From Salpingoeca rosetta (Eukaryota > Protista > Choanoflagellata), in NCBI GenBank assembly GCA_033442325.1, contig JAWQFM010000012.1, positions 333,781-397,780 on the forward strand: 64,000 bases of DNA, in the 5' to 3' direction. The notes beneath the pieces were generated by a model, which had not been told where the DNA came from, ran no database searches, and was given only the letters and a program-made list of their open reading frames with translations. Below are positions 57,078 to 60,787 of the stretch, piece after piece (within the stretch, counting starts at the first letter, position 1; the number at the start of each line of letters is the position of its first letter). Both the position numbers and the translations under genes were made by a program.

Positions 57078-60000
57078 ATGGAGGTGAGCCGGAAGAAGGT
57101 GATTGTGCTGTGTGGTGGCAGCAATGGCAACCATGCGCTCGTGGCTGATCTTGGCCGTCGCGAAGACTACACGGTACGCATGCAAGAGTAGCACACAAAC
57201 AGTTGCTGTGGATGGTTTGTGTGGCTGTGTGTGTGTGTGTGTGTGCATACACGTGTGCTTGCGTGTGTGTCTGTCTGTGTGTGTGTGTGCGTGTGTATTT
57301 GTGTGTTTGCGTGCGTGTTTGTGTGCGTTGCAGTGTTTGGCATGGTGAGCCAGTGACAGTGGAGATGACAGAGGTTTTTGCACCTTATCAAGAGGTTTTG
57401 CACCTTGCCATTACCTTGTACCCACAGCTCGGCGACAACACACACACACACACACGCACACACACACACACACACACACACACACACACACACAATGCAC
57501 TGTACTGCAGGTTCGCCTGATTACTCGACGACCAGAGAAATGGAAGGGCACGGTGTATGCTCGGGAACAGAAGTTCCTCACAGACTCCTACCCAATGTAC
57601 CCAAGCCCCACATGGTGGATCACATACTCAGGTTTGTGTGTCAGTGTGTCGATGTGTGCTTTGGTTGGCATCTTCCTCGTGGATCGATGTGGTTTGGTTG
57701 GCATCTTCCTCGAACATCCTTGTTGGAGATGCGCACATGAGTGATTGCGGCTTTTGCTCTGCAGCAACAAACAAGCACCGTCACACGCATGCACGCACAC
57801 ACAACTGTCTGCATGTCGCTCTCTCTCTCTCTCTCTCTCTTACCCAGTCAGTCTGTCTGTCTGTCTGTCTGTCTGTCTGTCTTTCCCTCTCTCTCCCTCT
57901 GTCCCTCTCCCCTCCTCTCTCTCTCACACACACACACACACACACACACACACACACACACACACACACACACACACACACACACACACACACACACTCT
58001 CTCTCTCTCTCTCTCTCTCTTTCTCTCTCTCACATTCACTCTCTTTTTCTCTCACACACCCAACCCCCCCCCCCCCAATATCTTCTCACGCCCTGCACAC
58101 CCCTACACACATGCGTAGGCGCTGCGGATGAGGTGTATGGGTGGGAGGATGCGGCCAAGGCATTGGATGGCGCCCACATGGCCCTGATGGTCTGCCCCGT
58201 GTCCGCGCACGAGGACATGCTGCGCATGCTCTTTGCCAGCCTGCCCGACCACCCCATCATCATCGGCACGTCGTACGGCCAGGGCGGCTTCGACTGGCTC
58301 GCCCGCAAGCTGCTCAAGGGCAACTCGCGCGCCAGCCTCGTCACCCTCTTTGCTATGAAGCACTACCCGCTGCTGTGCAAGGCGTGGGACTACGGCAAGA
58401 AAATCAACATGTTTGGCCGCTACCCGGATCTACGCTGCGCGGTCTCGCCACACACCACGCGCAACTGCGACGCCGTCAAGTTCTTTCTCGACGACATCTT
58501 CCAGAAGGATGTCAAGATTGTCACGGATTTTATCGTGCCCACCCTCGGCGCCACAAACCAGGTGCAGTTCGCATGTGTCGATCGCATCGTTAGTGTGTGT
58601 ATGTTGTGTGTGTATGTTGTGTGTGTGTGTGTGTGTGTGTGTGTGTGTGTGTGTGTGTGTGTGTGTGTGTGTGTGTGTGTGTGTGTGTGTGTGTGTGTGT
58701 GTGTGTGTGTGTGTGTGTGTGTACACGTGTGCACGTGTGGGTTCTTGCTTCTCCCTCCTCTTTGTGCCCCTCGCTGCCTCTGCACAAACACTTGCCGACA
58801 CGTGCCCCCTTCCGCTGTGCCTGTCATGACGTGACCCACCTCCGCCCCATCTTCCCCCTGCTGCTGTCCTGCTGCGCAGATCCTGCACCCGTCCATCTGC
58901 GCCACGCTGTTCAAGGGCTTTCGCGAGGGCGAAATGGTCTATGACAGACACAAGCTGTTCTACATGTGAGATCACAAAGCTCCGGTGCTCGTGTCTGTGC
59001 ATGGCGCCATGTCGTTCCAGGACACACACACACACACACACACACACACACACACACACACACACACACACAATACACACAATGAGCGAAACAATAGCAA
59101 CAACAACAACAACAACAGCAACAACAACTTAAACAACAACAACAACCATTGCCCTCAAATTGCGCCCACCTTTGACCAGTACACCTGTCACTCCTCATCC
59201 CCTTCCCCTCCTCCTCACCACCAACACCACCTACATGACGTCGTGGTGTGCAGGGAGATTGACGACGAGGCTGCCGGTTACATGTTTGATCTGTTTATCA
59301 CGGAGATCCCGACCATCGTGTGGGCGCTGGACGCGGCACTCAAGCGCAACGGCTCCCTGCGCTACCAAGTCACCTACGAATGGATCTCATCGGTACGTTG
59401 CGTGTGGCGGGAACTTTTCATCGTGGCGCACACGTTATTGCGGCATGTATTTGAGAGCACTTTCCAGGCTGCGTCCACACTTCTTCCTTCAATCTGTTAC
59501 CATGTACACTCATCCACTCACTCACACACACTCATACACACACACACGCGCGCGCGCGTGCGTGCAATCGCACCCTTCACACGCCACCGCAACGACCCGC
59601 GCCTGTACAGCTCGTTGGGCGGCTGCCAACGTTTGCGCAGCCCAAGGCAGTGCTGTCGCGGGCGCTCGGATGGGGCCTGCGGTCAAACCAGCGGCTGACG
59701 AAGGTCAAGGCGCCCATGATCCCGGGCAAGACGAAGGATGGCAAGCTGGGCATGGTGCCAAACATCCGCTCCCGGTTCTGGCTCGACGACATCCCGCACG
59801 GTGTGTTGTTGGGAGGGGAGGGGGGCTCTGTTGGGAGGATGGGGGGAGGGGGGTTGTCGTGTGTTGTATCGTGTCATGCAGTGTGAGATGTGTATCCCGC
59901 TTCTTAGTCTCATACCTTGATTGCATGTCAACCCCCTTTTGCAAACGCACGTCTGTTCGCTGTCGCTGTTGTTGCAGGCCTGTGCGTGCTGTTTGGCATT

Positions 60001-60787
60001 GCTGAGCTGCTTGGGCTGGAGGTGCCAACCATCCTCCACCTCATCCGCAGGAACCAGGAGATGATCGAAAAGGAATACGTCACCGAGCTCCCAGACGCAA
60101 AGGTAAAGAGGGTGTATGAAAATGTCGTGTTGTTTGCGTGCGTGCGTGCGTGCGTGCGTGCGTGTGTGTGTGTGTGTGTGTGTGTGTGTGTGTGTGTGTG
60201 TGTGTGTGTGTGTGTGTGTGTGTGTGTTCAGCGAACCCCTTGTCTGTTCTCAGCGTGCACGGTTTACAGGCCCTCACATTTGATCATGTGTACGCGTGTA
60301 CTCTCTTGCCGTGGCTGCATAGGGGAGCCTGCTGTGTGGACGGGATGCACACGAGACCTCTGCTCCACAGGCCTATGGCATTTACACGCTTGACGAGTTT
60401 GTCGAGTGGATGCAGTGGGACCGCACCAGCGAGCCCCCAGCGATTGCACGCCTCTCCCCATCCACAGGTACATGCGTGCACGAGCCACGTGTGTGTCTGT
60501 GTTTGTGTCTGTGTATGTGCGCGCGCGCGTGTGTGTGTATGTGTGTGTGCGCGCGCGTGTGTGTGTGTGTCCCTGCCTGCCTCCCGCTGTTTCCCACACA
60601 CGTTTGAAGTCAGTGTCAGTCCGTGTGCTTGTGATCCAACACAGGCCCAAGCAGTTGCGAATCTGCTCCATGTTTGCCACCACCATTCGCTCACCTCCTT
60701 TTGTTGCTTCATTCCATGCGTTGGGCTTTGCGCTTGTTCTCTTCAGTGCCACCACCAGACTCCGTGGAGACCAAGTCCAAGCTTTGA
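57078..60787 (+). CDS. Opine dehydrogenase (NAD/NADP octopine/nopaline dehydrogenase family) with predicted C-terminal PTS1 (-KSKL)
   Basis: VIVLCGGSNGNHA Rossmann motif, YGQGGFDW, NQ|ILHP (catalytic His), LFY, SRFWLDDIPH|GLCVLFGIAELLGLEVPTI (Arg and Asp of the RYxxEDIPxG motif), and PQAYGI. The final exon 60747-60787 reads PPPDSVETKSKL*. Confidence 0.88.

Follow-up and report, generated by a model that had tools for sequence, protein, structure and literature searches.

The analyzed window comprises 64,000 nucleotides (nt) of the Salpingoeca rosetta genome (GenBank assembly GCA_033442325.1, contig JAWQFM010000012.1, positions 333,781 to 397,780 of the forward strand), and the gene considered here occupies positions 57078-60787 of this window, on the plus strand. 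It encodes a protein of the opine dehydrogenase family, whose last exon supplies a canonical type 1 peroxisomal targeting signal (PTS1) at the very C-terminus. The gene consists of nine exons, every intron has GT-AG borders, and the 1386 coding bases, when joined, form a stop-free reading frame for a protein of 461 amino acids (aa). The C-terminus predicted from the joined exons is ...SPSTVPPPDSVETKSKL* (-ETKSKL), and the tail of the translated model reads ...LSPSTVPPPDSVETKSKL-stop. The translated model agrees at every residue with the public S. rosetta protein PTSG_07186 (461 aa; P0001 here), which also ends in -KSKL and bears the UniRef name "Opine dehydrogenase domain-containing protein". 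In a preliminary description of the locus, prepared from the DNA letters alone, the terminal exon had been called hidden; it is, in fact, already part of the public annotation of PTSG_07186. The splice sites proposed there, a phase-1 donor at about 60468 and an acceptor at 60746, were recovered both by exon joining and by the RNA junction: the donor lies after 60467 in phase 1, and the acceptor AG, preceded by a good pyrimidine tract, ends at 60746.

The use of the last exon was examined by comparing the region 60236-60830 with RNA from three studies, i.e., the raw reads of two RNA-seq runs (2026) and contigs from a pair of older runs belonging to other studies. The sole joint was 60467^60747, which removes the 279 nt of intron 8; it was carried by 88 and 33 reads of the two raw runs, which began at many different positions, and by one transcript contig from each of the two older runs. 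Exon depth reached about 250 and about 125 in the two raw runs, the orientation of reads was consistent with a transcript of the plus strand, and one contig of 1513 nt is compatible with a complete mRNA having short untranslated regions (UTRs). The exon 60747-60787 is thus used in the frame that had been proposed for it, as documented by the same junction in four runs.

The preliminary description had also allowed for splicing with or without a 27-nt exon (60645-60671), and for dual targeting of the enzyme through retention of the last intron. On paper, the 27-nt segment keeps the frame if included, and translation of a retained intron 8 would run to a stop at 60605-60607, without -SKL. Read depth in the two raw runs was zero in every bin of 60476-60735, including the bins outside the low-complexity stretch that was skipped, and because the depth is zero across the intron, the 27-nt exon is unused and intron 8 is not retained in the sampled RNA. 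Of the two splice forms envisaged, only the one without the small exon was therefore found, and dual targeting by intron retention finds no support in the samples examined, the intron depth being zero beside an exon depth of about 250x. No second isoform devoid of the PTS1 was seen in the two raw runs, which gave a single junction and represent samples limited to their growth conditions. The coordinates of all features are collected in Table 1.

Table 1. Exons, introns and accompanying features of the S. rosetta opine dehydrogenase family gene (window coordinates).
Feature	Coordinates	Strand	Remarks
Exon 1	57078..57173	+	Start codon, residues 1-32; glycine-rich cofactor loop G13-G-S-N-G-N18 at 57114-57131
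Exon 2	57511..57631	+	Ends in phase 1; T37-R38-R39-P40 after beta-strand 2 at 57523-57534
Exon 3	58119..58561	+	Residues 73-220, largest exon; 100% identity to PTSG_07186
Exon 4	58880..58965	+	Catalytic His223 codon 58886-58888 (= Pecten His212), invariant column
Exon 5	59254..59392	+	From exon joining
Exon 6	59611..59800	+	Arg350 at 59773-59775, Asp355 at 59788-59790 (= Pecten Arg324, Asp329)
Exon 7	59978..60102	+	PF02317 helical domain ends here; loose RNA ends at exon 8 continue into the last bases of exon 7
Exon 8	60323..60467	+	End of conserved core (PQAYGIYTLDEFV) and start of predicted disordered tail; ends in phase 1
Intron 8	60468..60746	+	279 nt, GT..AG, GT-rich low-complexity; spliced out in all RNA seen
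Candidate 27-nt frame-preserving exon (preliminary description)	60645..60671	+	AG before, GT after; RNA depth 0, no joints
Exon 9, 41-nt coding part	60747..60787	+	V-PPPDSVETKSKL and stop; KSKL codons 60773-60784, stop 60785-60787
3' UTR, approximate	60788..60868	+	Transcript contig extends about 38 nt beyond 60830 into (GT)n tract
Microsatellite tracts	57210-57500, 57810-58070, 58600-58720, 59020-59075, 60130-60230, 60490-60570, 60840-60915		Long (CA)n/(GT)n or (CT)n
Assembly gap	60941-61272		Downstream of the gene, directly after (GT)n-type tract

The membership of the encoded protein in the opine dehydrogenase fold family, judged from sequence comparison and a modeled structure, is secure, because the Pfam score, the alignment with the scallop enzyme, the Foldseek matches and the invariant His, Arg and Asp residues all point to it. 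The whole protein matched PF02317 (Octopine_DH) over residues 208-387 with 63.8 bits (cut-off 30); separate exons gave one weak Pfam match only, and the search of the protein against NCBIfam returned no family. The octopine dehydrogenase of the scallop Pecten was the only solved relative found by sequence (E 1e-23, residues 9-427 aligned), and its alignment stops at ...PQAYGIYTLDEFV (residues 415-427), the end of the conserved core. The AlphaFold2 model, built from 37 family sequences (mean predicted local distance difference test score, pLDDT, 90.8), is predicted to consist of an N-terminal Rossmann domain and a C-terminal helical domain, which superpose on the solved opine dehydrogenases. 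The 14 best Foldseek matches were all opine dehydrogenases, with 3iqd and 3c7a at E values of about 1e-24 to 1e-25 and template modeling (TM) scores of 0.69/0.78 to 3iqd; the others among these 14 comprised 1bg6 (CENDH of Arthrobacter) and the enzymes of staphylopine, pseudopaline and yersinopine, and ketopantoate reductases appeared only after them. Furthermore, H223, R350 and D355 are invariant across the 37-sequence alignment and align to H212, R324 and D329 of the Pecten enzyme, for which a His212-Asp329 relay and a role of Arg324 as an "NADH sensor" have been described (PMC2924402). The family assignment made at the outset was, hence, sound. On the tree, the subfamily to which the S. rosetta protein belongs is distinct, with 100% branch support.

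The C-terminal tripeptide -SKL fits the pattern [SAC][KRH][LM], and it is preceded by Lys and directly followed by the stop codon, so the canonical PTS1 that had been predicted from the last exon is indeed present in the spliced frame. The S. rosetta protein continues 42 residues past the PQxYG motif, compared with 9-28 in the scallop enzyme and bacterial relatives, and residues 431-461 have pLDDT values below 60 in the AlphaFold2 model, so that the PTS1 stands at the end of some 30 residues for which disorder is predicted and which would present it as a flexible linker. At the other end of the protein, no N-terminal extension that might hold a competing signal was found, beta-strand 1 beginning at residue 7 of the same model.

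It should be stressed that the signal is conserved. In the choanoflagellate-type clade (99% support), each of the five full-length members terminates in a PTS1: -AKL in Salpingoeca infusionum, -SKL in Diaphanoeca grandis, which represents the other choanoflagellate order, and -SKL, -AKL and -AKL in three more relatives. The tripeptide class is thus kept across the clade, although the rest of the tail diverges. Direct exon comparison matched the terminal exon with that of a close relative on a Tara Oceans metagenome contig (L016), where, with splicing inferred from DNA, a phase-1 last exon (829-869), likewise 41 nt long, encodes ...IPAPDKVEPVSKL-stop, ending in -SKL. The equivalent of exon 6 in L016 has 190 nt, the phase-1 donor is GTAAGT, the last intron has 143 nt, and the L016 protein aligns with that of S. 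rosetta over 166 residues without a gap; exons 7 and 8 are fused there (416-685), with the summed length unchanged and intron 7 absent.

As regards the intron content of relatives, a fragment that is 80% identical to the S. rosetta sequence (P0002) is continuous through exons 1-3 and departs from it precisely at the boundary of exon 3, which suggests, on the sequence, that introns 1 and 2 are missing there too or that this contig is a partly spliced transcript. In the S. rosetta gene, long microsatellites are found in six of the eight introns (1, 2, 3, 4, 7, and 8) as well as just past its 3' end.

The exhaustive profile search of the family yielded 1961 representatives at E <= 0.001, and the C-termini were counted in the 151 listed ones. 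A PTS1 of the [SAC][KRH][LM] type was present at the end of 19 of these 151, where 0.38 would be expected by composition (an enrichment of about 50-fold; binomial P ~2e-26). In the long-insert clade, eight of nine members carry the signal, and the contigs of two of its members contain neighbors of eukaryotic type (RING, TLD, WLM, and DnaJ). The family member of the bolidophyte Triparma ends in -SKM, and a PTS1 recurs at several further points of the family tree, at least five changes of PTS1 state being forced by well-supported branches. The conservation among orthologs that had been anticipated for the PTS1 was thus borne out in both clades and in the terminal exon of L016.

Two members of the long-insert clade were found in bacterial surroundings, namely P0015/P0047, whose C-terminus is -VEE, and P0057/P0200, whose C-terminus is -SKI (L011 4001-5785, L012 4001-5785, and L013 5001-6788); bacterial copies thus seem to be nested in a clade that is otherwise eukaryote-like and PTS1-bearing. 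They are accompanied by an RND efflux pump, IS66 and Mu transposases, a TonB receptor and a polyketide synthase resembling polyunsaturated fatty acid synthases. Judging from these sequences, P0015/P0047 and P0057/P0200 could be products of eukaryote-to-bacterium transfer, in which a useless PTS1 is decaying.

These data allow weighing of the possibility that the -SKL is fortuitous or non-functional and that the enzyme is cytosolic, like the opine dehydrogenases of invertebrates. Acidic residues (D and E) do occur within the 12-residue context of the tripeptide, and many eukaryotic members of the family, e.g., those of Besnoitia and Aplanochytrium, have no PTS1. However, a chance tripeptide hardly agrees with the retention of its class in two choanoflagellate orders and beyond while the tail diverges, with the roughly 50-fold enrichment, with a dedicated exon whose length and phase are equal in the L016 relative, or with the exposed position of a tail predicted to be disordered, and we consider this explanation very improbable. 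The PTS1 of the S. rosetta enzyme is, by sequence conservation and the modeled tail, likely to be meaningful, and import into peroxisomes is likely because the signal is spliced into the mRNA, is placed on a disordered tail, and is conserved in relatives.

The explanation that we regard as probable, taken as a whole, is that the gene encodes a peroxisome-targeted NAD(P)H oxidoreductase of the opine dehydrogenase fold, which acquires its PTS1 from a constitutively spliced last exon. According to this proposal, constitutive splicing of the nine-exon gene PTSG_07186 would yield an enzyme composed of a Rossmann domain and an Octopine_DH helical domain with the His-Asp dyad and the Arg, and the 41-nt last exon would put -KSKL at the end of the predicted disordered tail of about 30 residues. 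From what is known of PTS1 and PEX5, we infer that the folded enzyme would be bound in the cytosol by PEX5 through its free C-terminal tripeptide and then imported, still folded, into the peroxisomal matrix. There, following the chemistry of the family, it may use NAD(P)H to join a 2-oxo acid and an amine by reductive condensation, or it may run in the opposite direction, as a cleavage; substrates, cofactor and direction are proposed here on that basis. Its physiological role would presumably consist in coupling the enclosed pyridine-nucleotide pool to small metabolites able to permeate the membrane, and a role in an NADH redox shuttle would be plausible, by analogy with LDHBx and MDH1x.

Several observations weigh against this proposal, or at least against its functional part. 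Characterized enzymes share no more than 21-25% identity with the protein. In its glycine loop, GGSNGN stands in place of GxGxxG/A, with Ser and Asn at positions 3 and 6. A closed shuttle would need a cytosolic partner isoform, and none was present at the 3' end in the RNA examined; as weak evidence, no second opine dehydrogenase has been noted so far in S. rosetta, for which a genome-wide search was not made. Moreover, the gene neighborhoods of bacterial relatives are inconsistent, containing a DAO flavoenzyme, an FMO-like gene, an operon with a lipid desaturase and a methyltransferase, or nothing of this kind.

The cofactor site deserves closer attention. In the subfamily, the loop is GGSNG[NT], as opposed to GGGNGA; it is common to bacterial and eukaryotic members and is modeled with high confidence. 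After beta-strand 2, the subfamily has T-R-[RNSQ]-P (Thr-Arg-Arg-Pro in S. rosetta), whereas NADH-type relatives have G/A-D-E. An Arg placed just after beta-strand 2 (position 35 in Arthrobacter numbering) was proposed as a marker of NADPH acceptance in metagenomic opine dehydrogenases (PMC10787698). The profile alignment to 1bg6 stops short of the N-terminus, so the equivalence of the S. rosetta Arg with position 35 is tentative. As a lead, the sequence of the cofactor site hints that the enzyme may use NADPH rather than NADH; NADPH use would be at odds with a shuttle for the NADH of beta-oxidation.

This bears directly on the full model given in the preliminary description, in which an NADH-consuming opine synthase reoxidizes the NADH of peroxisomal beta-oxidation, and retention of the intron or use of the mini-exon gives rise to a cytosolic isoform acting as the other arm. 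In its favor, the PTS1 is real and conserved, the chemistry of the family consumes NAD(P)H with pyruvate, and PTS1-bearing dehydrogenases acting on pyruvate or oxaloacetate, i.e., LDHBx (PMC4359377) and MDH1x (PMC5133446), serve as precedents. Nevertheless, RNA depth is zero over both the intron and the mini-exon, the apparent lack of a second opine dehydrogenase mentioned above speaks weakly against it, and the acidic pair of NADH-type enzymes is replaced by Thr-Arg-Arg-Pro with the proposed NADPH marker. In this complete form, we find the model rather unlikely.

Alternatively, the enzyme might be peroxisomal without being a classical opine synthase, namely a fold member that prefers NADPH and acts on another imine or oxo substrate (e.g., imines derived from glyoxylate or from oxidases), which would link it to peroxisomal amino-acid or glyoxylate metabolism or to the NADP pool. 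The distinct, fully supported subfamily with its own GGSNG loop and TR[RNSQ]P segment, the Arg after beta-strand 2, and the great diversity of substrates among characterized family members agree with it, as does the gene of a DAO-family flavoenzyme located 14 nt upstream in one relative and nearby in another. On the other hand, this DAO linkage is not general, the correspondence to the NADPH-marker position is tentative, and genuine opine dehydrogenases are what the catalytic His, Asp and Arg, as well as the top matches by sequence and by fold, point to. This alternative is possible, but we hold it with considerable reserve, and we retain the broader proposal of a peroxisome-targeted NAD(P)H oxidoreductase.

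Concerning the neighborhoods themselves, the relative P0007, which has no PTS1, is encoded on a gene-dense contig that also contains an eIF5B-like gene (L005 3845-6329 and L006 82-2566), and it is here that a spacer of 14 nt separates the end of the DAO-family gene from the Octopine_DH gene. A DAO-family gene is also localized two genes upstream of the homolog in the bacterial locus L007. The DAO flavoenzyme and the Octopine_DH protein could, from gene order, form a two-enzyme module, a linkage that is not general. In an alphaproteobacterial metagenome-assembled genome (L009 2509-7215), the homolog closes what looks like an operon, whose other genes encode a fatty-acid desaturase with a cyclic nucleotide-binding (cNMP-binding) part and a fusion of a lipid desaturase with a methyltransferase; such a lipid context would be unexpected for this family. 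The use of neighborhoods as a guide to the substrate was dropped, as the patterns were inconsistent among the bacterial loci.

The peroxisomal membrane is impermeable to NAD(P)H, and pairs of dehydrogenases are needed for the redox balance of the matrix. To our knowledge, only a few such pairs have been recognized, i.e., those using malate, glycerol-3-phosphate, lactate, and isocitrate. An opine-type dehydrogenase whose PTS1 is conserved, both among the nearest living kin of animals and in a number of other protist lineages, suggests a further candidate redox route, and hints that opine chemistry has a cellular role beyond anaerobic muscle metabolism. As S. rosetta is transfectable and editable, the prediction is therefore directly testable. 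More tentatively, and with doubts that prevail for the moment, it may be supposed that enzymes of the opine dehydrogenase fold are widespread and unrecognized in the peroxisomes of protists, including both choanoflagellate orders, bolidophytes (Triparma) and several other lineages of marine eukaryotes, where an amino acid and an oxo acid would form a route moving NADH or NADPH equivalents across the membrane, beside the malate, glycerol-3-phosphate, and lactate shuttles.

A survey of the open-access literature turned up no publication about the choanoflagellate protein or about PTS1 conservation within the opine dehydrogenase family. The gene and its C-terminus are already public, and an opine dehydrogenase with a peroxisomal-type signal is in print once, for Diplonema (PMC8611851).

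Among known systems, the peroxisomal redox shuttles of yeast resemble the proposed role in function: a dehydrogenase of the matrix, Mdh3 or Gpd1, reoxidizes NADH there by means of a small permeant metabolite. These enzymes belong to other families, and their cytosolic partners are known. A structural analogy is given by the glycolytic enzymes of fungi, which, as Freitag and colleagues reportedly found in 2012, gain a PTS1 by alternative splicing. Like that of S. rosetta, their PTS1 comes from a separate 3' exon; unlike it, they have two isoforms, whereas one splice form was found here.

Within the family, the best comparison is with the octopine dehydrogenase of the scallop Pecten maximus (PDB 3C7A and 3IQD), a cytosolic enzyme of muscle. 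It shares with the S. rosetta protein the two-domain fold, an alignment over the full length and the equivalents of His212, Arg324, and Asp329. The identity is only 21-25%, and the scallop enzyme differs in ending a few residues past the core, without a PTS1, and in its cofactor site, where the loop reads GGGNGA and beta-strand 2 is followed by an acidic Asp-Glu.

The opine dehydrogenase of Diplonema papillatum was predicted, from the motif alone, to carry a glycosomal targeting signal, and it was discussed with regard to NAD+ regeneration and read as a bacterial transfer (PMC8611851, 2021). In both organisms, a targeting motif on a protein of the opine dehydrogenase family predicts its import; the destination would be a glycosome, a peroxisome-derived organelle, in the euglenozoan Diplonema, and an ordinary peroxisome in S. 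rosetta.

Finally, in the mammalian LDHBx and MDH1x, a PTS1 is exposed by stop-codon readthrough (PMC4359377 and PMC5133446). These are, similarly, dehydrogenases with a C-terminal PTS1, NAD-linked and acting on pyruvate or oxaloacetate, and they have been proposed to serve peroxisomal redox balance. Their signal is cryptic and reaches a small fraction of the molecules, whereas that of S. rosetta lies in the normal frame and is present on every transcript seen. With its spliced and conserved -SKL, the S. rosetta enzyme joins the PTS1-bearing pyridine-nucleotide dehydrogenases.

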